NCBI GenBank assembly: GCA_002269645.1
Contig: NIVC01000275.1
Location: 62,001 to 126,000, forward strand
Length of the DNA: 64,000 nt
Direction of reading: 5' to 3'
Source of the DNA: Macrostomum lignano
Taxonomy: Eukaryota
A program made the position numbers and the translations under genes. The notes beneath the pieces are model-generated. The model was not told where the DNA came from and ran no database searches. It worked only from the letters and a program-made list of their open reading frames with translations. Positions 7,946-45,339 of the stretch are shown here, in pieces (within the stretch, counting starts at the first letter, position 1; each line of letters begins with the position of its first letter).

Positions 7946-10900
7946 ATGGATAAAGCACTCGACGGTGGCTGGGGCTGGATGATTGTCCTAGCCGTCCACT
8001 TCATGCACTTTTTAACTGGCGGACTTGACAGAGCAACAGGAGTTTTCTACCGTGAAATTCTCTATGACATGCAAGAGTCTTCCGCATCGACAGCTGGATT
8101 TACTGCACTGCTTTTTTCCTCCAGGTTTCTTAGCGGTGAGTTAAAGATCTGAATCCCTGTGTTATTACTCTGTGAACGTTTCTCAGACAGGGATGTACAT
8201 GCATGAATGTTTTAACATTTATTTCGTGCAAAATATTTTTATCAAGGCCCAGTAGCGGGGGTACTATGCAAGTTTTTCTGCTGTCGAAGAGTAATGATGG
8301 CTGGAGGCCTCATATCCTTCGTCGGCGTGCTGCTGAGCTCGTTCTGCCGCAGTCTGTCGCTCATCTACCTGACCCTTGGTTTCATGACGGGAGTCGGCAA
8401 CGGCCTCGCCTACACTTCTGGCCTCTTGGCTGTCAACGACTACTTCAGCCGACGCAAGGCCACCGCCCTCGGCTTGGCGACCGCGGGCACTGGAGTGGGC
8501 AGCTTCGTGCTGCCTCTGCTCACCCAGTACCTCATCCAGGTGTACTCATTCCGCGGCTGTATGCTCATTCTGAGCGGTCTGTCGCTCAATCTGGTGGTGT
8601 GCGGCGCTCTGCTTTACCCGCTGCCGCAGGCTGCAGTCGGTGAGGAAAAGCCCGCCGAGTCAGTGGCACTGCGGGCAGTGGAAGGCGCAGAGAAGAATGG
8701 AGTCGGAATGAAACCCGATGAGGAACATTCTGCCAAGCAACCAGTGTCAGCTGATGCACAGCCGTTGCAAACAGCTGACCCTGCACCTGTGAGCCCCTGT
8801 CGTCGGTTCTTCATCCAGTTGTGGGAGAATTTCGACCTGAAACTGTTCCTCAACTGGCAGTTCAGCGTGTACGCGCTGGCGGCTCTGTTCATCTCTGCCG
8901 GCTTCAAGCCTGTCGCGGTGATTTTGCCGCACCACGGCCAGCTCAGGGGCCTGACCAGAACCACCTCCGTGCTGCTGATCTCCATTGCTGGTGAGCTGTT
9001 TGCAAGCAATCTGCGGATAAAGCAATAATTTCCTGAACTGGTGCAATGGGGGCATGGGGTAGCTCAGCCGTCTCGCTCTCGATCCACGACCCCCCTGAGT
9101 TCGTGCGATTCACGCCTGCTTGGAGAGCCAACTTCCAAGACAGAGATAGTGTACAGAGTTAGGGTTCCTTAGGTGGGTTCCGATACTCTTTCATCTTTTA
9201 TACTACGTACATTCCCTGTTCCTAAAAATCATAAAAATGCATGGCACTTACTTGACTTAGCTGCAGGGGGCTCCGTGCGTCCGGAAACAGCGAGGAGGCG
9301 TTGCCGCCCATTTCGCTAATCCCTGGCGACCACGGGCAGCTAGTGCTGCGGTGTCGCGCAGGGAGTTCCGGTGGTGCCGGTGTCCGCAGCGCGGTCCCCC
9401 TCCGGAGAGTCCAGGAGGTGGATTGTCGCTCGCCCAGTAGCCCTTAGGTAGCGGACGAGCTAGCAGAGGTTCTTGGGCCTGAAAACGTCGGAGAGGTCCG
9501 GGTTTGGGCCGAGGTAGGTAAGCCTGTCCTGAGTAAAGGCGGGGCATTCACAGATAAAGTGCTCGCATTCTCGACACCGGATAGGCAGAATGGGCATCCC
9601 TCACTGCGGATTTTTCCATGGAGGTGACGACGTCTGGAAAAACAGCCATGACCCGAGAGGGCCATGGTCACCGCCCTGATGTCCCTGCGGTTGAGTCCAA
9701 GCAGGGCCTCCCTGCGCAGGGCGGAGGAAGGACAGAGGACAGCCGCGCGGGATTGCCGGCAGTCTGGGGCGATTGCCCACCTCTCCCTGGGCTTTGAAGC
9801 CACCCACTGATTGATCCTAGTGGTGACAACGGCGATGTAAATGCATGGCACAGCTCGACTCATTGATTTTTTGAATCTATTTTATCATCTCTGTTACACA
9901 TATTGTTACACAGTCAGCTAAGAATGATAAAATAGATTTATGAAACCGATGAGCCGAGCCGTGTCATGTTAATGGTTCTTAAGCACAGGACATGTACAAT
10001 TGTACGTAGAATAAAAAATTAACACAGAATCCTAATTTTCTAAACGAAAAGCTCTATGAATATCAATGGAGCTATACGAAGGGCAAAACATATCAAAAGA
10101 TGAACACTGGGTCTGCCTCCTGCTCCTAAAATTTTCTAAGAAACGAGGTTTCCCGTCATTTTACTTGATCGTAGTCCTTGACGGGTTGTCGTGCAATTCA
10201 CAGCCACCAGGGCCAGGGGTTTCCCGTCCTTTTACTTGATCGTAGTCCTTGGCGGGTTGTCGTGCGATTCACAGCCACCAGGGCCAGGGGTTTCCCGTCC
10301 TTTTACTTGATCGTAGTCCTTGACGGGTTGTCGTGCAATTCACAGTCACCAGGGCCAGGGGTTTCCCGTCCTTTTACTTGATCGTAGTCCTTGGCGGGTT
10401 GTCGTGCGATTCACAGCCACCAGGGCCAGGGGTTTCCCGTCCTTTTACTTGATCGTAGTCCTTGGCGGGTTGTCGTGCGATTCACAGCCACCAGGGCCAG
10501 GGGTTTCCCGTCCTTTTACTTGATCGTAGTCCTTGGCGGGTTGTCGTGCGATTCACAGCCACCAGGGCCAGGGGTTTCCCGTCCTTTTACTTGATCGTAG
10601 TCCTTGACGGGTTGTCGTGCAATTCACAGCCACCAGGGCCAGGGGTTTCCCGTCCTTTTACTTGATCGTAGTCCTTGGCGGGTTGTCGTGCGATTCACAG
10701 CCACCAGGGCCAGGGGTTTCCCGTCCTTTTACTTGATCGTAGTCCTTGGCGGGTTGTCGTGCGATTCACAGCCACCAGGGCCAGGGGTTTCCCGTCCTTT
10801 TACTTGATCGTAGTCCTTGGCGGGTTGTCGTGCGATTCACAGCCACCAGGGCCAGGGGTTTCCCGTCCTTTTACTTGATCGTAGTCCTTGGCGGGTTGTC

Positions 10901-16900: not shown

Positions 16901-19900
16901 GCTTTCGCCAGGTTGAGGTCCTCCACCTTCTCCGTCAGCAGCCTCTCTCGGATTCTGGGGTTACTGGTCTTCTCAGCCAGCTGGTCTCTGATGAGATCGT
17001 CCTGTATTGCGCCGTAGTTGCACAGCTCCGTCAGCTCCCTCAGGGCTGCCACGAAGGTCTTGACGTCCTCGCCGGGTAGCTGCTGGCGCTGGCGGAAGCG
17101 ATATCTGGCCACCATCACGTTGGGCTTCTCGCCGAAAATTTTCTCGAGCTCCGCCTTAGTTGCTGCGAACGTGTCGTTCTCCTTGATTGCTTGGCGTGCT
17201 CGAGCAACCCGCTGACCTTCGAATCCAAGCAGATAGAGCAGAAGGCTCTTCTTCAGCGGTTTCGCCTCTTCCTTCCCTTCGGGCTCCTTGAATTGGGCCG
17301 CCTCGTAATAAAATTCAAAGGCCTCAATCCATCGGCTCCATGGTACTGTCGGTGATCCGCAGTTCGCCAGGAAGGGCGTGGGTGCAGGGATGCTAGCCGC
17401 CATCCTCGTCGCCAATGTTCTGTTGTTGAATTAACGAACGCAGAAACAAGATAGATAATTATCCGGGCGCTCAGTGGCACCAAAAGAGGGGGCTTGGCCA
17501 ATAGGAGGGCGGCTCGTATATTTATGCACGCGGGGAAGGAAAGTTCTAGAAAGACCGGGGAAGGAAACTTCTGGAACTATGCGTAAACAAGTCCGCGGTG
17601 GAAGTTTCTAGAAACGCTGTCCCCGAACTACCCCTACGCATCGCATGCCTTTGCAATACACAACAGGTTTCCCGTCCTTTTACTTGATCGTAGTCCTTGG
17701 CGGGTTGTCGTGCAATTCACAGCCACCAAGGCCAGGGGTTTCCCGTCCTTTTACTTGATCGTAGTCCTTGGCGGGTTGTCGTGCGATTCACAGCCACCAG
17801 GGCCAGGGGTTTCCCGTCCTTTTACTTGATCGTAGTCCTTGACGGGTTGTCGTGCAATTCACAGCCACCAGGGCCAGGGGTTTCCCGTCCTTTTACTTGA
17901 TCGTAGTCCTTGGCGGGTTGTCGTGCGATTCACAGCCACCAGGGCCAGGGGTTTCCCGTCCTTTTACTTGATCGTAGTCCTTGGCGGGTTGTCGTGCGAT
18001 TCACAGCCACCAGGGCCAGGGGTTTCCCGTCCTTTTACTTGATCGTAGTCCTTGACGGGTTGTCGTGCAATTCACAGCCACCAGGGCCAGGGGTTTCCCG
18101 TCCTTTTACTTGATCGTAGTCCTTGGCGGGTTGTCGTGCGATTCACAGCCACCAGGGCCAGGGGTTTCCCGTCCTTTTACTTGATCGTAGTCCTTGGCGG
18201 GTTGTCGTGCGATTCACAGCCACCAGGGCCAGGGGTTTCCCGTCCTTTTACTTGATCGTAGTCCTTGACGGGTTGTCGTGCAATTCACAGCCACCAGGGC
18301 CAGGGGTTTCCCGTCCTTTTACTTGATCGTAGTCCTTGGCGGGTTGTCGTGCGATTCACAGCCACCAGGGCCAGGGGTTTCCCGTCCTTTTACTTGATCG
18401 TAGTCCTTGGCGGGTTGTCGTGCAATTCACAGCCACCAAGGCCAGGGGTTTCCCGTCCTTTTACTTGATCGTAGTCCTTGGCGGGTTGTCGTGCGATTCA
18501 CAGCCACCAGGGCCAGGGGTTTCCCGTCCTTTTACTTGATCGTAGTCCTTGACGGGTTGTCGTGCGATTCACAGCCACCAGGGCCAGGGGTTTCCCGTCC
18601 TTTTACTTGATCGTAGTCCTTGGCGGGTTGTCGTGCAATTCACAGCCACCAAGGCCAGGGGTTTCCCGTCCTTTTACTTGATCGTAGTCCTTGGCGGGTT
18701 GTCGTGCGATTCACAGCCACCAGGGCCAGGGGTTTCCCGTCCTTTTACTTGATCGTAGTCCTTGGCGGGTTGTCGTGCTACTCACAGCCACCAAGGCCAG
18801 GGGTTTCCCGTCCTTTTACTTGATCGTAGTCCTTGGCGGGTTGTCGTGCGACTCACAGCCACCAAGGCCAGGGGTTTCCCGTCCTTTTACTTGATCGTAG
18901 TCCTTGGCGGGTTGTCGTGCTACTCACAGCCACCAAGGCCAGGGGTTTCCCGTCCTTTTACTTGATCGTAGTCCTTGGCGGGTTGTCGTGCAATTCACAG
19001 CCACCAGGGCCAGGGGTTTCCCGTCCTTTTACTTGATCGTAGTCCTTGGCGGGTTGTCGTGCAATTCACAGCCACCAGGGCCAGGCCCCGAGACACGGTT
19101 TGCACATGCCTGACGAATCTAGAAATTCAGGGCCTCTGTACACCCTTTGTGAGCCTGTGTCCAGCATTGGCGCGCTTGTATTTGCTTTGGAGTCAGCGAA
19201 ATGGGCAGAATAGCCTCAGCGCTGGATGCGGGACCGATGTCGCCGAAGGAGAGTGCCCAAAACTTTCCCACTAAAATTAATTATTAATGTTGAAACTATT
19301 TGCGATGTTTAAATTACAGTGGACGTCTGCATAAGCAATGAGGTGCCTATAGGATTACGGCGGTGTGTCCAAAGAGACTGGAGTTGTTCTAGTAGCTGTT
19401 AGTGATCATGCAGTGTCCAGGAAAGGACGGATAGCTCCTCTCACGCACCGATCCGCAGGCGCCTGCGACACGGTGTCGCGGTTCTCCCTCGGCCTGCTGT
19501 TCGACACGTCCCGCCTGGTGCCGCACCGAAGGCGCATCTGGAGCCTCGGCATGCTGCTCACCGCCTCCAGTATCGCAGCCTTCGCATTCATGCACACCCT
19601 GGCTCCGTTTGTGCTCGTGTCGGTGGCGTTCGGCCTGACCTCCGGGCTGTTCGTCAGCCAGCTGTACTGCGTGCTTGGCGACCTGATCGGCCGGGAGCGC
19701 TGCCGCACCGGCATCGGCCTGCTGATCCTCTGCCGCGGTGTCGGCGTGGCGATCGGGCCACCTCTGGCTGGGGCAATCAAGGACATCAGCGGCTCCTATA
19801 AGCTGTCGTTCTGTGCCCTCGGCGCGGCCACTTTCGCTGGCTTCGTCTGCCTGTGCGTGCTGGACGTCGTACTGCTGCTGCGGGGTCGGCGTCAACGATT

Positions 19901-19940
19901 GTCGAATCCGGAAGCCACGACTGTTGAGATCGCCACCTGA
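7946..19940 (+). CDS. SLC16/monocarboxylate transporter family MFS protein, paralog A; exons 7946-8135, 8247-8990, 19459-19940
   Basis: [10 protein letters not shown]-terminal MCT motif, [18 protein letters not shown] motif and phase-1 GT/AG junctions. Intron 2 (~10.5 kb) holds the satellite, LINE and LTR element. Exon structure mirrors paralog B. Confidence 0.88.
9196..10016. mobile_element. Fold-back (palindromic) MITE-like element interrupted by a LINE fragment
   Basis: The left arm TTTTATACTACGTAC..ATGCATGGCAC[LINE]AGCTCGACTCATTG..AATCTATTTTATCAT pairs imperfectly with the right arm ATGATAAAATAGATTT..GATGAGCCGAGCCGTGTCATG..GTACGTAGAATAAAA. Confidence 0.65.
9248..9838 (-). mobile_element. 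5'-truncated non-LTR retrotransposon 3' end (RNase H-type LINE, I/LOA/R1-like)
   Basis: The minus strand encodes [30 protein letters not shown] and, after a frameshift, [21 protein letters not shown], typical of the post-RNase H zinc-knuckle C-terminus. TAAG-like tail and 13-bp TSD AAATGCATGGCAC (9235-9247, 9839-9851). Confidence 0.72.
10147..13133. repeat. 71-bp satellite array, left part (~42 units)
   Basis: Unit GGTTTCCCGTCCTTTTACTTGATCGTAGTCCTTGGCGGGTTGTCGTGCGATTCACAGCCACCAGGGCCAGG, with the 71-nt period also visible in the ORF track. Confidence 0.98.
13134..13383 (-). repeat. 3' LTR (250 bp)
   Basis: TGTTCTGTTG...ATACACAACA, identical by eye to 17416-17665. Confidence 0.97.
13384..13398 (-). 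other. Polypurine tract
   Basis: GAAGGAGGGGAAGAA on the minus strand directly before the 3' LTR. Confidence 0.9.
13432..17403 (-). CDS. Gag-Pol polyprotein (Gag, two Zn knuckles, protease, RT, RNase H, integrase)
   Basis: CTRCGRDH..C and [13 protein letters not shown] knuckles, LMVDCGA protease, [19 protein letters not shown] and ILDD in [13 protein letters not shown] RNase H, HEGHQG..CVAC with VDIVG, TDNGPQF and NGQTERLN in integrase. The PR-RT-RH-IN order indicates Ty3/gypsy. Confidence 0.97.
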   Translation of the reverse strand: MAASIPAPTPFLANCGSPTVPWSRWIEAFEFYYEAAQFKEPEGKEEAKPLKKSLLLYLLGFEGQRVARARQAIKENDTFAATKAELEKIFGEKPNVMVARYRFRQRQQLPGEDVKTFVAALRELTELCNYGAIQDDLIRDQLAEKTSNPRIRERLLTEKVEDLNLAKALSIAVSIEEASKEAKAMAPSTSSTAAVQSIRQPRGQKVAAKGRHRPAPAGRTAKPGGACTRCGRDHGPTTHCPAKGKTCEACGKKNHFRSCCRSQQAAVNAADEVITVYAVPGGDREVRATLELGPDRTAVSLMVDCGARVSLLSRQTADRISGAVTSPTTTKLRAYGGLPIQLSGVTELEVRYGDKAMQHRFFVAPGGDNIVGRDLMEKLGFRVDLSGQPPGIAEVSDLTADLQARYPTTFSGAIGCCAGAVHQPKVDPAVRPVQQPLRRLPLMRQEQVGAELDKMEKDGIIERVNASEWVSNLVVTAKKDGSIRICVDVREPNKALIVDKHPMPQLDEIASKIKKGRGRVFSKIDLKSGYMQMQLHESSRNLTAFITHKGLFRYRRVPFGLASAPAAFQRMLDDQAADLDGVEHILDDFIVYGRSEEEHDRRLEKLLQRLEDKGMTVNKQKCAFKQKEVEFFGFVISEAGIRPTESATAAIRDIRQPGDQKALKSFLGAANFLMRFVPHYADITEPLRRLLKADSNFDWTPECQRAFEAVKDAISKAPTLAHFDPKADTIVTTDASAKAIGAQLSQIQDGVERPVAFAARALTTTEQRYAANEREALASLWAMEKWHFYLYGRHFELRTDHQALQQLLLGPTGTGHRPLRIHRWCDRLLQYDFHVRYLPGNSNYVADLLSRWSSGSELNLIHLPDTPGPRVKAVTLEALTAGTAADETLRTAIRSVISGRWPADIDDVELRALWKVREQLSVWNNGECLAFQERAVIPESLRGQLLEQAHEGHQGIVRTKQALRDSVWWPAMDKAVETFVRHCVACETAEKNFKVSPAPLKTIRWPDSPWAEIAVDIVGELQAAPASSRYLLVVTDLHSKWPEVIPTASITTETICRAMRSLFARWGLCEKVLTDNGPQFGSEFSDFLAEQGIRHVKTSLYHPQTNGQTERLNRSLLASIRAAMAENRPFQDAVTNFLSAYRSAKHSLTGKSPAELMLGRKWRTAITMLSPGGGMTTTEATPQALRQQIEARQQRIKAYTDARRRARPETFHPGDWVRIRRPTKKGKLGTRLSRPLQVLRQAGHHAVELSDGTRWNQQRLIRTPHPAQPRERFDPLVDSAPTTGAGTAAPAAPAAEPPARTAAPRRSERARHPPIRFMNCRWD
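17400..17414 (-). other. Primer-binding site, probably tRNA-Ser(GCU)
   Basis: TGGCGACGAGGATGG follows the 5' LTR and is complementary to the 3' end ..CCATCCTCGTCGCCA of animal tRNA-Ser(GCU) as I recall it. Confidence 0.8.
17416..17665 (-). repeat. 5' LTR (250 bp)
   Basis: Direct repeat of 13134-13383. The minus strand carries a TATA-like GCATAAATATA. Confidence 0.97.
17666..19085. repeat. 71-bp satellite array, right part (~20 units)
   Basis: Same unit, resuming in phase after the TSD. Confidence 0.98.
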
Positions 19941-21972: not shown

Positions 21973-24023
21973 ATGTCTCAAAGTGCAGCACCGGACGGTG
22001 GCTGGGGCTGGATGGTGCTGCTGGCGGGTCACTGCATGCACATTCTGGCCGGCGGGCTCGACAGGGCGTCTGGAGTGTTCTACAGGGAGATCCTCAAAGA
22101 GCTGCAGCAGTCTTCTGCCTCCACTGCCGGCTTCAGCGCTTTGCTGTTCGCTTCCAGGTTCATGAGCGGTGAGTGCATGGTTCAAGTTGCGTTTCAGATT
22201 AGATTAGATCAGATTAGAGATTTTAAGAGACTTCAGCGAAGACTGATCTAGAGCTTGTATTGTATTTGTCTGGCACACAACGTGAGTTATTCAGTTTCTG
22301 AGTCCTCCAGCAGCAAAAATGTTTACACCGATAACTTTCAGGCCCCATTACCGGCGTTCTCTGCAAGTATTTTGGCTGCCGCAGGGTCATGATGGCTGGA
22401 GGCCTCATATCCTTCGTCGGCATGCTGCTGAGCTCGTTCTGCCGCAGTCTGTCGCTCATCTACCTGACCCTCGGCTGCATGACGGGAGTCGGCAACGGCC
22501 TCGCCTACACTTCTGGCCTCTTGGCTGTCAACGACTACTTCAGCCGACGCAAGGCCACCGCCCTCGGCTTGGCGACCGCGGGCACCGGAGTGGGCAGCTT
22601 CGTGCTGCCTCTGCTCACCCAGTACCTCATCCAGGTGTACTCATTCCGCGGCTGTATGCTCATTCTGAGCGGCCTGTCGCTCAATCTGGTGGTGTGTGGC
22701 GCTCTGCTTTACCCGCTGCCCGCTGAGAAGAACTTAGCAAATGGAGCACTCGAGGCCGAGGCTGCAGACGCGACTTCTGAGGCACTCATCGATACAGCAG
22801 GTCAGAGTGAAACCGCTGAAAACAAAAACTCCAAGGATTCCACCGGCGAGAAAGTCCTGGGCCAATCCATGACAACGATCAAGTCAAGGACGTCCCTGGA
22901 GCGAAGCGGTCGAGGCTTCTGCATGGAGCTGTGGGCCAACTTCGATCTGAAGCTGTTCCTCAATCCGTACTTCTGCTTGCTGGCCGCCGCCACTCTGTTC
23001 ATCTCGTCGGGCTTCAAGTCCGTGGCGGTGATCCTGCCGCACCATGCGCAGCTTCGCGGTCTGGACGACATGACATCTGTTCTGCTCATATCCATATCCG
23101 GTAGGTTCGCATCAAGTATTTATTTAACTATGCATACTTCGTTTTGAAGACGGGTTTCGCCAAAACACACTACGGAAATAGGAGAGTTCAAATTAACTGC
23201 ACTAGACGCGCAGTTCTGCACTGACAAGCTGTAAAATGCGCGATGTATGATCTATGTCCGACTTGCCTTCGATATTATGCTCGTATTATAGATTCGGTCA
23301 ACATTCGATGCTCGTCCAAATGTATTGGTGTACTTGATGTAAATGTACTTAATTCCTATAACCCAAAGGCGATCGAAGGTTCGTAAGTCCATGCGGGACT
23401 TATGGTATAATAAGCGGGATTCTTTCTGCAGTAGGACGTTGCGGTGAAAATTTACTGTTTTGGGTGCCGTTTTTTAGTGCAGAAATGACTTGATTTCTTT
23501 TTACCATCATAAAATTATGCACATTTTCTGCCTAGGCGCCTGCGACACTGTGTCCAGATTCTCAGTGGGGCTGTTCTTCGACATCCCCCACCTGGTGCCG
23601 CACCGAAGGCGCATCTGGACACTCGGCATGCTGCTCACCGCCTCCAGCATCACAGCCTTCGTTTTCATGCAAAATTTAATACCGTTCATCCTGATCTCGG
23701 GAGCGTTCGGCCTGACCTCCGGGCTGTTCATGAGCCAGTTGTACTGCATGCTGATTGACCTGATCGGCAGGGAGCGGTCCCGCTCCGGCATCGGCCTGCT
23801 GATCCTCTGCTTCGGCTTCGGCGTGGCCGTCGGACCGCCGACAGCGGGCGCGCTGAAGGACGTCACGGACACTTACCAGCTGTCATTCTGCGTGCTCGGC
23901 GCGTCCACCTTCGTCGGCTTCGTCTGTCTGTGCGCGCTGGACGTCGCGCTGATGACGCAGCGACGACAGCGACGGCGGCTGAACTTGAACCCTACCCTGG
24001 ATATTTCCGTAGATCAAAAGTGA
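21973..24023 (+). CDS. SLC16/monocarboxylate transporter family MFS protein, paralog B; exons 21973-22168, 22342-23100, 23536-24023
   Basis: APDGGWGWMV motif and the same three-exon phase-1 structure as paralog A with canonical GT/AG sites. Confidence 0.9.
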
Positions 24024-25400: not shown

Positions 25401-26446
25401 TGCTCAGGGGAGTCGGCGGAATGGGCAGCAATGCCTCTCGCTGGTTGTGTGACAATGTCGCTTAAAGTGCGCCAGGGTGCACACAGCCCCCAGCCCATAA
25501 TAAAAAGGAGTAGAGAGTTTGCTTTTAATAATCACGATCAGTGCTGACTAATTTGTAATAATTAGTCATTTCTGATTTATTTTGGACTTTTTATTAAATA
25601 TTTATTACGTAATTCAATTCCCGTTTGGCTGAGAAAACAAACAAGTCAAATCTATATTCAAGTGGTCTCATATTTGGAGCTATAAAGGTCAAATGAATTC
25701 AGCATTTCCAAAGAAGATTCCTATCTAAAAAGTACAAAATCCCCAAAAAATAGTAGCTAAACATCATTTTCCTTTGGAGTCTAAAAATAGTGACTGTAGA
25801 TTGAAAGTCTTAACCTATGTGTAGCTTATTCAAATGCGTTTAGATCCCTTTCTTAGCTGCCTCCCTAACTCCCGATTGGGGTCTCAATTTCCAATTCTGA
25901 GTGTCGAAGTAACGGTAGACGATACTACTGAATCAAAAGTAGCTTAATAGCATACGAGCTTTTGGTATTAAAATAAAAATACACTTTCATTTAAATTTTC
26001 TCGTCTATACATTCATACACTTTCATGTCCATAGTGGAGACGCAGATACTTTAAGTAGCAAGTAAGGCATTTTTCGAAATTTTTTATGTTACACAACTTA
26101 ACAACTCTGAAAAGATGGAGAACTTCGACAGCTTTGTTTTTCTACTGTCTTTGTCTCTTAAAAATCTTAAAAATTTAGAAAGACCCAAGCATTTTGCCGC
26201 TTACTTTGGGGTACCTCAATATTTGACGAACTCAACCTACTGAGTTTTGGTTTCTGCCTGTCAATGTCTTGGACTGGGAGATTGGGAAGCTCCCCGAGAG
26301 AGACGGGATGAAGGCCTCTCCATGTGTTGTACCTTCCTCGGCCTTTTGAATAATTAATTGATTTGTACGAGGGGTGGGCGCGTCCGGCTGAAGGGGATTA
26401 AATAAAGCTCTAGTGGGGCCGCTTAGCGGGGAGGCGGAAGCTGGAG

Positions 26447-28763
<2,317 letters not shown>

Positions 28764-30244: not shown

Positions 30245-33200
30245 CTATACTACGTAGTCAGTAGTCCCGTGCAGCCGCCGCACCGCAGCCTCGGCAAAGC
30301 AGGCGGCGGCCAGGGCGGCAAACGGCTGCCAGTGCAGGCCCTGCTCTCCTGTGTGCGAGTCCGCGCAGCCCCGGATCAGCAGGAAGGAGTCGCAGCGGCT
30401 GCCTAACGCCGACTCCAGCACTTCGTCGAATCCGGCGTCCGCTCCGATCACCTTCGAGGTTGTGTTCGAGGCCAGCCGGTCGGCGGCGCCGGACAGCGCA
30501 CCGCAGGACACGGCGCCGAAAGCGACATTCGGCGCAGCGACGGTGGTCCTCGGCGGCCGAGCGAACGCTGGCGCCTCCGCGGCCAGTGACTCCAAGATGG
30601 ACGTCCAGTTGATGGCCTCCTCTGCTTTGTCCTCGACGGGTTCAGCGGCTGCTCGCGCGGCGGTCAGGAGGCGCCGATCCACAGACCGCCAGCTGCGCCC
30701 TCTGGCGACGTCCAAGTAGTCTCCACCGACGTCGCCAGCGTCCCCATCGCCGATAAAGACGTCGCCGAGTCGGCAGGCGCCGGACGGGGAACCGCCGACG
30801 CCGACCAACAGGAGATGCTCGACGTCCTGGAAGACGCCCAGCAGGCGGGTGACGACGTTTCCACAGGCGACCCGAGCCTGGAGGCCGTCGGGCGAGCCAA
30901 CAACCGCCGGCAGCTTGGTGCTGACCACACGACGCCTCCCAATGCGGCCCAGGGTGTACACGTGCGAGTCCCGGCCGCCGCCGCGGGTCTCGTACTGTAC
31001 GAAGGACTCCTTGTCCAGCGTCACCGCGTCCAGCGCCCGTTTCTCGCACATCAGCCTGGTTACCATGGCAACGGTTGGTCGGGCCCGCCGCAGCAGCTGC
31101 AGGTCGGCGAAGTTGGCCCGGTTGAAGCTGACAACACGGCCCATGCCCCAGCGGTCCGCGCCGCTCTCTGACTGCGACGGCTGTTGCAGCTTCTTGTTGC
31201 CGATTTTGCTGCTTCTAGAAATTTCGCTACCTTCCGGCTGCTCCTCCTGCAGCAGGTAGGCTGTGCCGCCGGGCACCGGCCGCATGAACAGCCGGCGCTG
31301 CCCACCAGCTCGTCCAGCGCCGATTCTGTGGCGCCCCGATCCGAGCTTGAGTCGGCCGACTCGATGGCTCTGTCGGTTGGAGCAATCGTTGTTGCTTTTG
31401 TTTGCTCAATAGCTTTTCTTCATGATTCTGGTTCACGTGATTCAGGATCACACTGACTGTCGGTTAAGCAATCCGGGATCACTAACTTCCGGTTCACTTG
31501 ATCTGGTACTATTAACTTCCAATTCACTTTATGTGGGATCACTGAGTTTCGGTTTAGCAGAACCAGGATCACTAAATTCTGGTTTAGCAGAACCGAGATC
31601 ATTAACTTCCGGTTTAGCAGATCCGGGATCACTAACTTCCGGTTTAGCAGAACCGAGATCATTAACTTCTGGTTTAGCAGAACCGGGATCACTAACTTCC
31701 GGTTTAGCAGAACAGGGAGCAGATCCGGGATCACTAACATCCGGTTTAGCAGATCCGGGATCACTAACTTCCGGTTTAGCAGATCTGGGCACAGAATATA
31801 TTCTGTGGATCTGGGATCACTGACTTCCGGTTCAGCAGATCCGGGATCGTTGACTTCTGTTTTACTTGATCCGGGATTATTGACTTCCGGTTTCCGATGA
31901 TTCGTCCTCATAAAAATTTTGGTTTTCAAGTTTCCAGGCCATATGCTTCTGGTACATAAACTTAGTGAGAGCCTCCAGTTTTGTCAATAACAGGAAGAGA
32001 AAAAATGCCCCCACACGTTTTTTTAGGCTGATACAGCTGCGAATCTCACCCGACAAGTTCGTTCCGATTGAGCACATTCGGGAACGCCGCCTCCACTAGG
32101 CTGACCAACTGGTCCTGAAGGCGCTTCGCTTCTGAAATTTAAATGATGAATTCTAACAAATTGCTAGTGGGACAAAAATGGGCTATTAAACCCTGAATTT
32201 GGAATGGGGAATTCGGAATCTGTCGAAGTCTCACCGAGCTCCCGATTTCTCTGTTCGAGTTCGGCCGCCCGATTCGCCCGCTGCTCGGCCAGCGCCTCGG
32301 CCGTCCGTCGCTCCCACTGTTCGGCATCCCACGTCAGCGGCTCAAGTCCGTCGATGGCCGCTCGGCGCCAATTCTCGCGCTGCCAACGGCGCCGCGACTC
32401 GCTGCGCGCCAGTTCCAAGCTCGCCCGACGCGCCGCCGCGCCTTCGCCCTCCACGACAGCTTCGGCGCCGGCTTCGGGCAGCAGCTCGAAGGCCAGCAGC
32501 GGCACCTCCCGGTCGGTGTCGCCAGCGGTTCGTGTCACCACCTTCAGACTCCGTCGCCTGCTGGCCGAGTTGCCGGCCTCCTGATCCAGTCGCAGGCTGC
32601 TAAGACCGGCCGGATCCGCCGCTTCGAACGGCAGTCGCCATGCCGGCCCGCCCCTGTCCTCCACGACTAGCGCCAGGAGGCTCCGACGCTCTGACGACGG
32701 CTCCAGCGACGCCAGACGGATGACGGTGGGCCGCTCCGAGCTCGACACTCGACGATTCAGCGGCTCAAGCAGCTGGAAGTCGCTGGCCGCGGCCGCATCG
32801 AGGACTTGCGGGAAGGCGGCCGGCGGGACCAACGCGGTGCACAGTGAGCGCAGCAGGAGCAGGCACAGCGGCTGTTCCACCTCCGTCTCCGTCGGCGCCG
32901 CCACATCCGCGCTGGCGTCGACTTCTTCGCGTCGTGGCAGAACCCGGATGTCGAGCAGGTAGTTGCCCGGCTGGGGAAGCGGATGTGCACCTGGAGAGGC
33001 AGGCGGAGACAAGTCATTGTAGTTGGCAGGGGGATCTTGCAAAGCGAGTCTTATGAAATCGTGTACTTGATTTGCCGAACCTGAAATCCTTCGGGCGCGC
33101 CGTTGACCATGACAAAGCTGCTCAGCGGCTCTGCCAGCAGGTCGCCAGGCCGCAGTCGCTGTAGGATCGCCCGAGCCACGTAGCGGCCCTGCGTTCTGAA

Positions 33201-36200
33201 CAGCAGCGTCAGCTCGGCCTCGTGTCGCAGGCTCAGGCACGGCTCCCCCCCGCCTCCGGGCAGCGTCGGCGACTTCAGCTGGATTTCGTCGGTCAGGCGT
33301 CTCCTTCCGAGCCGTCGCTGCTGCTGGTTGTCGACGTTGGCGGGCCAGCCGAGCAGCGAGTCGCAGCCGGGCAGGCCGAGGTGAGCACCGGAGGCGGCCG
33401 TGTCGGCGACCAGCAGCAGCTCGCAGAGCGGTCGCAGCCTGGCGGCGTCGCGCCAGATGGTCACGGCGAACCAGCCGCTGCGAGGGGCTAGAAATCGAAA
33501 GCGGCGGTCTCGGCCAGCGCGCTCCGACCACTGTAGAACATGCCGCTTGAGGCCGTCGCCGGTGTCGGTCGGACTGTCGACGTCGCCGCCGAATGTGACG
33601 CAGCAGGGTAGGGGAGCGTCGGGATTGTCTCCTATGTAGTTCAAGTAAGAGCATGGCGGATGAGTCATAAAGTGTTTCTCTAGAATCGATGAGTCATAGA
33701 AATTTAAACTTTATAGCTGATAAGTCTCATCTGTAGAATGTACACTCTAGAACTGATGAGTCATAGAATGTACACTCTAGAACTGATGAGTCATAGAATG
33801 TACAATCTAGAACTGGTGAGTCACAAGTCGCACCCAGCGGATTCGTAGAGGTCAATAGCCAAGCTGCCTCGCCATCCTCAGCCTCCAGGGTCGCCGCTTC
33901 CGCCTCTTCCGGTTGACAGCCCATCAGCTGAACTCCCTCGAGCTCGGCCTCCTCCGTCAGGCCAAACTCGGCCAGCTGGCCGGCCGGAAAATTGGCCGGC
34001 TCCGGTGCCGCGGCCGGGCAGTGAACCACGTAGGCTGCGAAGTGCTCAGTGAGCCAGTCCGGTCCGCGTTGAACTCCAACTCGAAGCTCGAAGCGGCCGG
34101 CTAGGGGGGCGAGGAATTTCAGACAGACGCGACCGCTGGCCAGTCGGATCGGCTTGCTGACTGCGGCGCCGGCTACCGGAGTGCTGCCGGAGTTTCTGCT
34201 GCCCACCTGCTCGGCCTTGGTGCGTGAGTGAATTCATGAGTGAGTTCATGAGTGAGTTCATGAGTGAGAGAGTAAGTAAGTGAGTGAGTTCATGAGTGAG
34301 TTCATGAGTGAGTTCATGAGTGAGAGAGTAAGTAATTGAGTGAGTTCATGAGTGAGTTCATGAGTGAGTTCATGAGTGAGTTCATGAGTGAGAGAGTAAG
34401 TAAGTGAGTGAGTTCATGAGTGAGTTCATGAGTGAGTTCATGAGTGAGAGAGTAAGTAAGTGAGTGAGTTCATGAGTGAGTTCATGAGTTAGAGAGTAAG
34501 TAAGTGAGTGAGTTCATGAGTGAGTTCATGAGTGAGTTCATGAGTGAGTTCATGAGTGAGAGAGTAAGTAAGTGAGTGAGTTCATGAGTGAGTTCATGAG
34601 TGAGTTCATGAGTGAGTTCATGAGTGAGAGAGTAAGTAAGTGAGTGAGTTCATGAGTGAGTTCATGAGTGAACTCATGAGGGAGTTCATGAGTGAGTTCA
34701 TGAGTTCATGAGTTCATGAATGAGTGAGTGAGTGGGTGAGTGAGTGAGTGAGTGAGTGAGTGAGTGAGTGAGTGAGTGAGTGAGTGAGTGAGTGAGTGAG
34801 TGAGTGAGTGAGTGAGTGAGTGAGTGAGTGAGTGAGTGAGTGAGTGAGTGAGTGAGTGAGTGAGTGAGTGAGTGAGTGAGTGAGTGAGTGAGCAGGTACC
34901 TGCACAATGTACCGATACCGCCCCGCGACGGTCTCCTGCAGCAGCAGGTCGGCCACTCCTCCCTGGCAGGGGATGACGCACAGCGGGCAGTTGACCGGCC
35001 GCAGTCCGCAGACCCCCATGGCGGCCCGGTTGCCATCGAAGTAGGCCGGCAGCCGGTGAAACTCGTCGAGGCTGAGCGGCCGGGCTAGTAGCTGCCAGTC
35101 AGGTCCGGCGCCCTCCGGCAGCAGCGGATGGTGCGAGAAGGCCAGCCGGGCCGGGTCAGTCAGGAAGAAGAAGTCGTTCCGCTGAGGCACCGCCGCGGCG
35201 GCCACGGCAGCCTCGGAGGCCTCAGCGTCGGCCGCCAGCGGGAGGCCCGCCGAGCCCCAGATGGCATCGACGTGGCGCCACTCGCCGTCGACGAAGCAGG
35301 CAAACCAGGCGCCGCCGACGTGCGACCGATGGCCGGTGGCATAGTTGGCGCCCTTCTTGAGGCCCTCCAGGCGCTGGCAGAGAACTCCGCTGAGGCTGAG
35401 TAGGAATGTGATGAAGAATTGAAAACTCTTCTGAGAACAAATCATTTTAGCGCAACAGCAACTACAGTGAATGATTTTGGCGCCACAACAACTACAGTAA
35501 ATGATTTCGGCGCCACAACAACTACAGTAAACGATTTTGGCGCCACAACAACTTCAGTAAATGATTTTGGCGCCATAACAACTACAGTAAATGATTTCGG
35601 CGCCACAACAACTACAGTAAACGATTTTGGCGCCACAACAACTTCAGTAAATGATTTTGGCGCCAAAAAAACTACAGTAAATGATTTCGGCGCCACAACA
35701 ACTACAGTAAACGATTTTGGCGCCACAACAACTTCAGTAAATGATTTTGGCGCCATAACAACTACAGTAAATGATTTCGGCGCCACAACAACTACAGTAA
35801 ACGATTTTGGCGCCACAACAACTACAGTTTGGCGCCACAACAACTACAGTTTGGCGCCACAACAACTACAGTTTGGCGCCACAAAAACTAGAGCTTGGCG
35901 CCACAACAACTACAGCAAATGATGATTTCGGCGCCACAACAACTACAGTAAATGATGATTTCGGCGCCACAACAACTTCAGTAAGGGATTTTGGCGCCAC
36001 AACAGCACAGACGCTCCTCACCTCATGACCGCCTCGAACACCTCGGACTGCCAGTCTGGCCGGCCGGCCGCCCGATCGGCCAGGCAGGGCAGCCGGTGCA
36101 GCTCTCGGGGCCGCTCGGCCAGACGGCAGACGAGTCCGAAAGCGGCCACTGTCCGGTCCAGATCTTCCGGACAATCCGCAAAGAGGCGACGGCAGAGGCC

Positions 36201-36521
36201 GGCCAAATCCGAACCGGATTGAAGGTCGAGAGTTCGAATCCTGGCCAGGCCGGCCTCGTACCTGGCCGGCTCCAGCAGTTCGGACTTCAGCCGGCTGGGC
36301 GGGAACGGCTGCGGCTTCTGCTGGGCGGAGGTTGGCGACGTCAGAGGCGGCTGGCCGCGGCTTCGCTGAAGCTGCTGCAGCCTGTCCGGCGTTGGAATTC
36401 CGCAGTCGGCCAGCGCGCCGGCCAGCTCTGAAGGCGAGGTCGGTAGGACGAACTCCTCCAGCGGGATTTCGTCCGGAGCGTAGCGGTAGTCGCTGTAGTA
36501 GCTGTTCTGCGGCAGCATCTT
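30245..36521 (-). CDS. KY/hillarin-type transglutaminase-like protein apparently fused to a winged-helix and a PNP/UDP nucleoside-phosphorylase-like domain; exons ~36521-36022, 35395-34900, 34215-33834, 33631-33081, ~32990-32235, 32131-32050, ~31369-30245
   Basis: KPQPFPP, AWFACFVDGEWRHVDAIWGS and FFLTDPARLAFSHHP are KY-like motifs, and (F)PQPGNYLLDI is a KY beta repeat. LVSLVEAAFPNVL..ESALDELV is WH-like. YTLGRIGRRRVVSTKLP, LLVGVGG, RLGDV and LIRGCAD are PNP-like. Splice phases are mutually consistent. The 5' end is uncertain and may include ORF 37578-37769. Confidence 0.72.
31480..31885. repeat. 30-bp minisatellite (GGATCACTAACTTCCGGTTTAGCAGATCCG), intronic
   Basis: Read directly. Confidence 0.93.
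33695..33815. repeat. 30-bp repeat (ATGAGTCATAGAATGTACACTCTAGAACTG) x ~4, intronic
   Basis: Read directly. Confidence 0.85.
34225..34890. repeat. Compound (GTGA)n-derived satellite with GAGTTCATGAGT and GAGAGTAAGTAAGT variants, intronic
   Basis: Read directly. Confidence 0.95.
35455..36003. repeat. 30-bp minisatellite (ATGATTTTGGCGCCACAACAACTACAGTAA), intronic
   Basis: Read directly. Confidence 0.95.
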
Positions 36522-38085: not shown

Positions 38086-38105
38086 TATCAGCGCCATCTT
38101 AATCC

Positions 38106-41935
<3,830 letters not shown>

Positions 41936-41974
41936 CTGTTGGGGATAAGGCTGGCGAAGTCAGTTGGGAGGCCG

Positions 41975-42675
41975 CCTGGTCAGTGTTTGGGTCAGTGTTT
42001 GGGTCAGTGTTTGGGTCAGTGTTTGGGTCAGTGCTTGGGTCAGTGTTTGGGTCAGTGTTTGGGTCAGTGTTTGGGTCAGTGCTTGGGTCAGTGTTTGGGT
42101 CAGTGTTTGGTTCAGTGTTTGGGTTAGTGTTTGAGTCAGTGTTTGGGTCAGTGCTTGGGTCAGTGTTTGGGTCAGTGTTTGGGTCAGTGTTTGGGTCAGT
42201 GTTTGGGTCAGTGTTTGGATCAGTGCTTGGGTCAGTGTTTGGGTCAATGTTTGGTTCAGTGTTTGGTTCAGTGTTTGGTTCAGTTCTCATGTCAGTGTTT
42301 GGGTCAGTGCTTGGGTCAGTGCTTGGGTCAGTGTTTGGGTCAGTGCTTGGGTCAGTGTTTGGGTCAGTGCTTGGGTCAGTGTTTGGTTCAGTGTTTGGGT
42401 TAGTGTTTGAGTCAGTGTTTGGGTCAGTGCTTGGGTCAGTGTTTGGGTCAGTGTTTGGGTCAGTGTTTGGGTCAGTGTTTGGGTCAGTGTTTGGATCAGT
42501 GCTTGGGTCAGTGTTTGGGTCAATGTTTGGTTCAGTGTTTGGTTCAGTGTTTGGTTCAGTTCTCATGTCAGTGTTTGGGTCAGTGCTTGGGTCAGTGCTT
42601 GGGTCAGTGTTTGGGTCAGTGCTTGGGTCAGTGTTTGGGTCAGTTCTCATGTCAGTGTTTGGGTCAGTGTTTAGG
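41975..42675. repeat. 12-bp minisatellite (GGGTCAGTGTTT), intronic
   Basis: Read directly; it contains an internal duplication of about 276 bp. Confidence 0.95.
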
Positions 42676-43254
42676 TCAACCACAGTATTTGAAGCAGATG
42701 ATTTGGAACTGTGCTCTTGTTCATCTGGTGAGATATAGATTGGACTCAAGCAAAGTGTCAACTATGTAAATAAAATGCATATTATCCTAGAGTACCCTAT
42801 GCTATACGCTCGTACAAGAGCTGTAAAGGGTGATATGGTAATTCCAGCTGTCAATTAAATGTGTGTACTCAGCAGAGAAGTGTCGCTACATGTTATGCTA
42901 TATGTTCTCAACTTGAGTACCTGGTATTCTTATCGATTCGGGGATATCATCTGGGACCAATAATATCTGAGAAGCTCTGAGCCTGATGCGCGCGAGAACA
43001 ATGGGAGCGAGAGAAGAGAGAGGAAACGGAGTGGAGTGGCTTTTCGGGGTGAAAAGGATGGCGGAATGTTGAGAAACAATATCAGGTCACATCGTGTCAT
43101 GCCGCTCTTTCACTTGGGAAAATAAACAGATACGGAATTCCCTGTTTAAATTTGATGATTGGATATGGGGGTCTCGCGCTAGCTGGGTGGGAATTGGAAG
43201 AAAAAAATAAACGAGGTGAAGACGGGTCAAACGGGGAGAAGGAGAGGAAGACGT

Positions 43255-43965
43255 AGATAGTGAGGGAGATGGAGAGGGAGATCGATATCGAGATGGAGAG
43301 GGAGATGGAGAGGGAAAGGGAGATAGAGATGGAGATAGAGATGGAGATGGAGAGGGAGATGGAGAAGTAGAGGGAGGGGAGAGGGAGAGAGAGAGGTAGC
43401 TGGAGAGGGAGAGGTAGAGGGAGGGGAGGGGAGAAGGAGAGGGAGGGAGAGGGAGAGTGAGAGGTAGCTGGAGAGGGAGAGAGAGGGAGATGGAGAGGGA
43501 GAAATAGATGGAGATGGAGATGGAGATGGAGAGGGAGATGTAGATGGAGATGGAGATGGAGAGGGAGATGTAGATGTAGATGGAGATGGAGATGGAGAGG
43601 GAGAGGTAGAGGAAGATGGAGAGGGAGAGGTTGAGGGAGGGGAGAGGGAGAGGGAGAGAGAGGGGGAGATGGAGAGGGAGAGAGAGGGAGATGGAGATGG
43701 AGATGGAGATGGAGAGGGAGATGTAGATGGAGATGGAGATGGAGATGGAGAGGTAGAGGAAGATGGAGAGGGAGGGAGAGGTTGAGGGAGGGGAGAGGGA
43801 GAGGGAGAGAGAGGGGGAGATGGAGAGGGAGAGAGAGGGAGATGGAGAAGGAGAGATAAAGGGAGGGGAGGGGAGAGGGAGAGGGAGAGAGAAAGAGGGA
43901 GATGGAGAGGGAGAGGGAGAGGGAGAGGGAGAGGGAGAGGGAGGGAGAGAAGGAGGGTGATGGGG
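43255..43965. repeat. Purine-rich (GAGAGG/GATGGA) low-complexity repeat
   Basis: Read directly. Confidence 0.93.
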
Positions 43966-45339
43966 AGGCTGAGCAGCCGCCTAGACACAAGGTAGTGAAA
44001 GCAGAGCAGGCGGCAAGATGAAAGCAGAGGAAACTCAAGGCAATAAAAAGAATAATGCGACGCGGAGTCACGCAATAATTGTTCCTGGCGCGGCCATTCT
44101 CCCCTCCGCAAACAAAAAACAACCACCAGGATGAAAGGGCCGCCCAAAAAACATCAGAGGGGAAATTTTAGCCGCACAGGAAAGACCGCGGTCAAACAGT
44201 TTTATCCACTGGCTTCGCAGCATCGCTGCAGAGTTCTGCACAGATGGGTGGCCGTCTGCGGGGTGGACATGCAGGATCAAACACAGACGGCGCGACTCCA
44301 GTGGGATTTAAATGCGATGAAAGACAGACAGGGAGACACAGAGCGATGCTATGGGGATTTTTCCTGTGCGCGTTCGCGTCACTGATTGACGCCGGCGCGC
44401 AATTAAGACGCAACAAAGCGGGCCGGGCCGGCATCGTGAAATCCGTCAGTCCGTGGAGTTCTAGAATATCTGGTGTCTGGAGTGCGGGCTAACTAGCTAA
44501 ACGCAAAATTGGAAACTGTGAATTTATTCGTTATTTTTACATTTCGTATTCGTTAACTTGCTGCTATTTTTGAAAATCACTGTCTAAGGCAGCCGTTATT
44601 TCGCCGATTTTAAAAAAATAAGTCCAAAATAGTTTTTGTTAAAAATGGTGACTTTGAAGGAAACCTGTGGGGTGAAAAAGTTGGTGCTGTATCTTCAACA
44701 TTTGTTTAGGTTTAAATACAGTAAATTGTGCTGGCGTGCATTGTTTAAAGTAATTGTTATTTAGTTTAAATTTCTAGTTGGATCATCATTGTCAGTGTAC
44801 TATTTTCTCAATCAATAACCTTTAATAACATTAATTAATTAATTAATTAGCATTCCTTTTAGTGTTATTTAATGTCCGGTTAAAACAGTTCTTGCTAAGC
44901 TTTATCCGACAATTATCTGAGTGTTCATAAGAAATTATTGTCACAATAGACACAAAACTATTGATTTTGTTTAAAAGATAAAATGCTTACATAAAAACAT
45001 TGACTTACTTACCTTACTTGCAAAAGATAATTATATAAAAGTAAAATTTTGTTTTAATAATATCTCCATTAATGTTTAACAATAATTTGAATCAACAATA
45101 ATGAATGACTATGTAATTTGAATAATGGTTATAAAAACTGGTTTTATTTTGTTTTTCTACTCAGGTTCTTAAGCTTGGTCTGAAAAAAACTATTTCTACA
45201 ATCAGAGGAATAGTTCGTTTATTTGCGGCTTTTGCGGTCAGCGATAATTGCGGTTTATGAGGTACATCCCAGTCATCTTATTTTAGAACTCCACAATCAT
45301 TCCAATGCAGTTCCATTTTGTCTCTCTATCCCCCCATAC

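Follow-up and report, generated by a model that had tools for sequence, protein, structure and literature searches.

A KY-like gene of the flatworm Macrostomum lignano raises the question of whether the genomic stop of its reading frame is the real end of the protein. The gene lies in the window, by which we mean the whole stretch of 64,000 nucleotides of contig NIVC01000275.1 (assembly Mlig_3_7) analyzed here. It is a GC-rich, multi-exon gene on the minus strand, extending from ATG 36518–36516 to a stop TAG at 30247–30245, with GT-AG at the borders of all seven exons. An initial annotation had proposed that the KY-like open reading frame (ORF) need not end at its genomic stop and can be spliced to exons for a winged helix and a PNP-like nucleosidase domain. 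The proposal agrees with a sister copy of the gene, g1, whose annotation reads through the same junctions. With a probability of about three in four, we favor a KY-like ORF that is cis-spliced to the winged helix and PNP module, forming a lineage-specific M. lignano fusion (gene cluster Mlig026044).

The junctions are found in the last three exons. Exon 5 (32990–32235, minus strand) begins at the annotated acceptor ctctccag|GTGCAC and carries an internal phase-1 donor, CTCG|GTGAGA, at 32235. A 103-nt intron GTGAGA…TTTCAG (32234–32132) separates this donor from the acceptor of the 82-nt mini-exon 6 (32131–32050), which encodes helix 1 of the winged helix (QDQLVSLVEAAFPNVLNRNELV) with a phase-1 acceptor and a phase-2 donor. 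The mini-exon reads E-AKRLQDQLVSLVEAAFPNVLNRNELV-G and the join with exon 5 gives ...RNREL-E-AKRLQDQLVSLVEAAFPNVLNRNELV; every element of this first junction is present and in phase as initially annotated, and all of them recur in the g1 protein PAA65175.1. The second join, across a 680-nt intron (32049–31370) with a 30-nt minisatellite, connects the phase-2 donor at 32050 to the acceptor at 31369 in frame, again as proposed, and the same junction is found in PAA65175.1 and in A0A1I8HJZ6. Exon 7 (31369–30248, followed by TAG 30247–30245) completes the winged helix and continues with a linker and the entire PNP-like domain. With the 103-nt intron retained, the KY ORF stops at TAG 32166–32164, and this would yield a KY-only isoform of 910 aa.

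Evidence for the fusion comes from the sister copy. BOX15_Mlig026044g1 (PAA65175.1, UniRef100_A0A267EUF2), on contig NIVC01001676.1, has a coding sequence of 1296 aa in which the KY-like part is followed by the winged helix and then by the PNP domain, both frames being intact. The protein holds the junction stretches …EGFQVHIRFPQPGNYLLDIRV… and …RNRELEAKRLQDQLVSLVEAAFPNVLNRNELVGAIESADSSSDRGATESALDELVAQRRLFMRPVPGG… and the C-terminal …DYVV, and its exons map to splice sites homologous to 32235/32131 and 32050/31369. Its ORF stays open, in the correct phase, through the ~416 codons of the winged helix and PNP module. A0A1I8HJZ6, a 205-aa gene model of the older ML2 assembly, independently covers both junctions, and the UniRef100 entry of the 1296-aa sequence has three members. 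For the Mlig_3_7 annotation, the TBONE pipeline divided RNA-seq transcripts wherever experiments had mapped spliced-leader or poly(A) sites; the g1 model was left uncut, and no separate downstream gene is called in this annotation at either the g1 or the g2 locus. The full product, at 1296 aa, is longer than the ~950 aa first estimated. The combination of domains had also been unfamiliar to the initial annotation. No mention of the gene ids was found in the literature, but the fusion is already deposited in GenBank as a hypothetical protein (PAA65175.1). The 90% cluster of the fusion is represented by the truncated 719-aa protein of the window copy, and a search with the PNP half misses the fusion for this reason. 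Further fusions may be concealed likewise behind truncated cluster representatives.

Frameshifts in the window copy

The window copy is BOX15_Mlig026044g2 (g2), annotated as the 719-aa protein PAA86533.1, which the KY-like part matches at 100%. At the DNA level, the window and contig NIVC01000275.1 are 100% identical across 23.7 kb. Two frameshifts that the initial annotation did not notice separate it from g1. The first is in exon 5, where the C-run at 32976–32973 is one C shorter than in g1. With the acceptor at 32990, the protein reads VHIRFP and is then out of frame, ending at 32757; this accounts for the junk C-terminus of PAA86533.1 and its truncation at 719 aa. An alternative AG acceptor at 32971 would restore the g2 frame. 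It was set aside as a possible rescue only, the annotated g1 and g2 proteins both using 32990. The second frameshift is in exon 7, again one C short against g1, between 31302 and 31301. The spliced frame is off by one base after ...ALDELVGSAG (ESALDELVGSAG) and reaches a stop at 31062–31060, its last sense codon ending at 31063. The PNP domain of the window (RLFMRPVPGG…DYVV) is in another frame of exon 7 than the start of the winged helix. Exon 7 therefore encodes a winged helix and a full PNP domain, as first described, but the spliced frame of the window does not arrive at the PNP domain.

The nature of the differences between the two copies points to the origin of these frameshifts. Between 33823 and 26000, g1 and g2 are 99.5% identical. 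In the interval 33747–28247 they differ by six single-base indels, one intronic substitution and one 12-nt difference in minisatellite length. Five of the six indels are changes in homopolymer length (C4/C5, G5/G6, T8/T7, C3/C4 and C4/C3), and the exonic indels are just the two frameshifts. Such an excess of indels over substitutions is a signature of consensus error and makes artefacts the most likely source of the frameshifts. Mlig_3_7 was assembled with Canu from PacBio reads and then polished with Pilon; it contains large duplicated blocks, in which short reads map ambiguously. It is probable, judging from this pattern, that both one-base deficits of g2 are uncorrected PacBio/Pilon indel errors and not real inactivating mutations.

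The 5′ part of the gene differs from the rest. Exons 1–3 with their introns (36518–33834) are 91–95% identical between g1 and g2, and from exon 4 on the copies are nearly free of substitutions. The contrast suggests gene conversion, a recombinant haplotype or assembly collapse. Exons 1 and 2 carry 10 synonymous and 4 non-synonymous changes between the copies, as would be expected if the KY-like part were under purifying selection.

Domains and origin of the fused gene

By sequence comparison, the winged helix and PNP module is a member of a protostome-wide family, with representatives in ticks, scorpions, mites, insects, nematodes, a nematomorph, a tardigrade, a rotifer, a chiton, a nemertean, a brachiopod and a cestode. 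The PNP domain matches arthropod and other protostome members with phmmer E values of 1e-35 to 1e-30. Among 57 relatives scanned with Pfam, HTH_69 is found in 38 and PNP_UDP_1 in 24. The mini-exon aligns with helix 1 of HTH_69 proteins (…E.AYPN…), and tblastn matches it with homologs in tick and scorpion. Of the 79 columns conserved in the family, the fused copy has kept 53, and 13 of the lost columns belong to the missing N-domain. In the family alignment it retains the Glu of the CEK motif and the TKLP, GN..TRLLG, GVGG, RLGD and RGxAD motifs, the last with the Asp of RGxxD, which is assumed, and not aligned, to be equivalent to D472 of Cap17 and D353 of DtcC. The idea that a ribose-binding Glu had been lost (DTEFD to DAGFD) was considered and rejected, because canonical members vary between E, G, D and H at this position. 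Canonical members weakly match the PADLOC CBASS effector model PDLC00759 ('PN-superfamily', E 1e-5 to 2e-6) and give weak matches to MTA/SAH nucleosidases. Sequence and profile searches of the PDB returned nothing for the PNP domain, and weak matches only for the winged helix.

None of the 57 scanned PNP relatives has a transglutaminase-like or Ig-like_KY domain. Among the best 150 of 426 matches, the long proteins with a PNP domain far toward the C- or N-terminus that were looked up are fungal NLR-like, and a KY-type N-terminus, judged by length, is present in none of these 150. The combination of KY-like part, winged helix and PNP domain therefore looks confined to M. lignano in these searches. 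In some spiralian members of the family (chiton, nemertean), a Methyltransf_FA domain (farnesoic acid O-methyltransferase-like) is inserted after the N-domain and ahead of the winged helix; N-terminal remodeling in the family is thus not restricted to the flatworm.

M. lignano also has a canonical member, the 589-aa protein of Mlig017830g1-3 (PAA70171.1). Mlig017830g1 is the best match of the window PNP domain (phmmer E 3e-51, ~52% identity over the matched stretches). This gene has its own mini-exon (…VRVQEQVMRTIEEAYPNVLTTEELSK), with an acceptor in phase 1 and a donor in phase 2, and the intron that follows it interrupts the same codon position as the corresponding intron of the fusion. Because the fused gene kept an internal exon with a phase-1 acceptor, a phase-1 donor is needed upstream; the KY-like ORF provides such a donor. 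In the fusion, the PNP part is a single exon of 1.1 kb (31369–30248), where Mlig017830g1 has three introns. Relative to that gene, intron loss in the fused copy is biased toward the 3′ end. The canonical N-domain of ~170 aa (…GDHxGIVINK…FPRDYVGFIKKIMKLMQ…) was not found in the 64-kb window by tblastn with 23 family members at E≤10, and it is not present in PAA65175.1.

These features suggest a route to the fusion. The 3′ part of a conserved protostome gene encoding the N-domain, winged helix and Cap17-like PNP domain would have been duplicated directly downstream of a KY-like gene, the duplicated portion beginning at the mini-exon for helix 1 of the winged helix. A phase-1 GT donor within the last coding exon of the KY gene would then have joined the phase-1 acceptor inherited by the mini-exon. 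In the product, the ~170-aa N-domain would be swapped for ~890 aa of KY-like protein, with a degenerate transglutaminase-like core, Ig-like_KY-type beta domains and a charged, helix-like tail.

The KY-like part begins with exon 1 (36518–36022, minus strand), which has the phase-2 donor AG|GTGAGG and is the same as residues 1–165 of PAA86533.1. Exon 2 (35395–34900) contains the degenerate transglutaminase-like core (…SEVFEAV…GGAWFACFVDGEWRHVDAIWG…) and was delimited by its translation, splice context and match to PAA86533.1. Exon 3 (34215–33834) covers a beta-rich region of Ig-like_KY type, the homologous stretch of the paralogs giving weak Ig-like_KY matches, and exon 4 (33631–33081) follows from its translation and PAA86533.1. 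Pfam Ig-like_KY (PF23265) matches residues 625–663 of PAA65175.1 with an E value of 2.9e-5 and 24.6 bits, below the cut-off of 27, and matches two paralogs at E 0.12–0.2. Transglut_core gives no match even at E≤5. Automatic UniRef names of gene fragments and paralogs are 'TGc domain-containing' or 'Transglutaminase-like'. The part is weakly assigned to the KY/hillarin family, as initially named, from the sub-threshold Ig-like_KY match, these automatic names and the overall layout. The catalytic Cys and His appear by eye to be replaced (…SEVF…, …GGAWF…), and the part may be a pseudo-enzyme scaffold. Sequence searches with the KY part found M. lignano paralogs as its only relatives, a profile built from the KY paralogs recovered the protein of the window itself and nothing else, and a PDB search with the KY part returned nothing.

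Alternative readings of the locus

Several observations weigh against the cis-spliced fusion. The support for its junctions is the provenance of the annotation, not RNA read counts, and no ortholog of the fusion was found in other species. As assembled, the window copy is broken and has no continuous fusion ORF. Several loops conserved in the family are deleted in the fused copy. On the fused protein, Pfam PNP_UDP_1 is sub-threshold (E 0.02–0.14) and HTH_69 is not reported for the 1296-aa sequence at E≤5; the PNP domain of the window has no PADLOC match. AlphaFold2 gives a mean predicted local distance difference test score (pLDDT) of 36.6 for the window PNP domain (alignment of 18 sequences) and 33.8 for the KY-like part (4 sequences), with no fold support in either case.

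One alternative is that the module is decaying. The winged helix and PNP exons would then be a dead fragment of a Mlig017830-type gene, spliced by accident onto KY transcripts; the fused ORF would be functionless and the two frameshifts of the window copy real. The identity of only ~52% to the canonical paralog over matched stretches, the lost loops, domain models of Pfam and PADLOC that are blind to the module or sub-threshold on it, and an exon 7 that has none of the three introns of the parent gene are all compatible with such a history. However, the g1 ORF of 1296 aa is open across the ~416 codons of the module in the right phase, its sequence has three UniRef100 members, and the majority of the family-invariant motif residues are kept. 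The copies differ by homopolymer indels with hardly any substitutions, which is the signature of sequencing error and not of decay, and in the 5′ exons synonymous changes outnumber non-synonymous ones by 10 to 4. On balance we regard a dead fragment as unlikely.

Another way to separate the two parts is an operon. In M. lignano, ~30% of genes are trans-spliced, ~15% are estimated to be in operons, and intergenic distances peak near 100 bp. The KY-like gene could accordingly end at TAG 32166–32164, with the winged helix and PNP exons forming a downstream cistron that receives a spliced leader at 32131. The TTTCAG acceptor fits the top spliced-leader acceptor motif, [T/C]TNCAG, the KY stop is just 33 nt upstream of it, and a spacer of ~100 bp is that of the operons of this species. 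However, a separate downstream cistron would have no usable start codon. No in-frame ATG occurs in mini-exon 6 or within the first 26 codons of exon 7. The terminal ATG of the spliced leader, when joined to mini-exon 6, reads MKRSAFRTSWSA-stop, in the wrong frame and with a stop after 12 codons. Initiation at the first in-frame Met (LFMRPV) would lose helices 1–3 of the winged helix, though these are conserved. The 103 nt between the parts have no poly(A) signal, AATAAA, ATTAAA, AATATA and TATAAA all being absent. TBONE cuts at spliced-leader peaks, yet the g1 model is whole, as one gene of 1296 aa. In addition, the acceptor phase of the mini-exon is inherited from an internal exon, as seen in Mlig017830g1. 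A separate trans-spliced gene, which the initial annotation had named among the findings that would overturn it, is on these grounds very improbable.

Least probable of all is a chimera, in which StringTie/TACO merged two overlapping transcripts and the junction of exon 5 with the mini-exon is a rare read-through splice giving no stable protein: genome-guided assemblers frequently merge neighboring genes in compact genomes, and precursor RNAs that encode several proteins make up ~7% of the assembled transcripts of M. lignano, but here the junction depends on a donor located within the KY ORF and preserves the frame over two introns, the downstream part lacks its own start codon, and the same joins recur in a second gene model from a different assembly (A0A1I8HJZ6).

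Neighboring sequence and comparison with known systems

Mini- and microsatellites are dense in introns and in intergenic DNA, including 26400–27240 and 38100–44200. Within the gene, intron 1 contains repeat units of ~24 nt (35960–35470), intron 2 contains (CTCA)n and CTCATGAA units (34890–34240), and the array of the 30-nt minisatellite unit between exons 6 and 7 is at 31900–31500; (GTCT)n-type arrays occur elsewhere. The lengths of the satellite arrays are unequal between g1 and g2. An uninterrupted 1332-aa pol ORF of Ty3/Gypsy type is found at 17430–13435 on the minus strand, with protease, RVT_1, RNase H, integrase zinc finger and integrase core. Exons of an MFS_1 transporter are present on the plus strand in two tandem copies (8216–9025 with 19353–19937, and 22335–23144 with 23478–24020), the first of which appears to be split by the retrotransposon at 13–17 kb. 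An ORF piece at 1656–2213 on the minus strand has a BSD domain (Pfam E 4e-12) and is probably an exon of another gene.

The wider family of the module has been placed among immune nucleosidases. Rousset et al. 2023 (bioRxiv 10.1101/2023.01.24.525353) assign arthropod and nematode Zalpha-like plus PNP proteins to a defensive clade of Cap17-like ATP nucleosidases, citing D. melanogaster Q8MRM6 and C. elegans H2L0A5, and report ATP/dATP cleavage by one sponge and one fungal member of the clade. In bacteria, PNP domains from this clade have been proven to act as immune effectors that degrade (d)ATP, and they are also active in one protein of a sponge and one of a fungus; the winged helix and PNP family of animals has been noted in the literature but not studied. 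The idea of a nucleosidase effector at this locus agrees with the published work on the wider family. We infer an enzymatic activity, a substrate and any immune role of the fusion as follows. The PNP domain would act as a purine-nucleotide N-glycosidase; its most likely substrate is (d)ATP, which is also the substrate of Cap17, DtcC and the sponge DDAN protein. The winged helix may bind nucleic acid or serve as a regulator. The KY-like part, in place of the family N-domain, would supply localization or binding of a partner or sensor. A more specific possibility, which we consider quite unlikely, is that the KY-like module does more than tether the enzyme passively and serves as the sensor or gate of an ATP-nucleosidase immune effector in an animal. 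The flatworm would then have rewired the conserved Zalpha-like/PNP effector to be fired by a cytoskeletal or protein cue in place of the usual N-domain of the family. If true, animals would have a trigger of a new kind for immunity by metabolite depletion. A natural swap of the N-domain together with a canonical paralog, in one flatworm capable of transgenesis and RNAi, offers a side-by-side system for the role of the N-terminus in sensing, localization or auto-inhibition.

Compared with the KY (kyphoscoliosis peptidase), hillarin and C. elegans LTD-1 proteins, the KY-like part appears to have the same arrangement of a transglutaminase-like core followed by beta-sandwich repeats, with a sub-threshold Ig-like_KY match. 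It differs from that family in that Transglut_core is undetected and the catalytic Cys/His positions seem by eye not to be conserved. To our knowledge, no KY-family protein has a winged helix and PNP tail. The PNP domain belongs to the PNP_UDP_1 superfamily, as do Cap17 (CBASS), DtcC (Detocs), sponge DDAN (Death + PNP) and fungal NLRN (PNP + NLR), and fungal NLR-type PNP proteins are among its distant matches. In contrast to Cap17-type proteins, the window domain gives no direct significant match to Cap17-type models, and in contrast to immune ATP nucleosidases the fusion is made without a sensor-type partner such as NACHT, Death, receiver or SAVED. The fusion also resembles the protostome proteins that combine a winged helix (HTH_69 / Zalpha-like) with a Cap17-like PNP domain, with which it shares homologous domains (E 3e-51 to 1e-30) and common motif residues. 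From these it is distinguished by the deletion of several loops, by a winged helix that Pfam HTH_69 does not detect, and by the replacement of the ~170-aa N-domain (…FPRDYVGFIKKIMKLMQ…) with ~890 aa of KY-like protein. With Mlig017830g1 the likeness extends to gene structure: the mini-exon for helix 1, its phases and the position of the downstream intron are the same.

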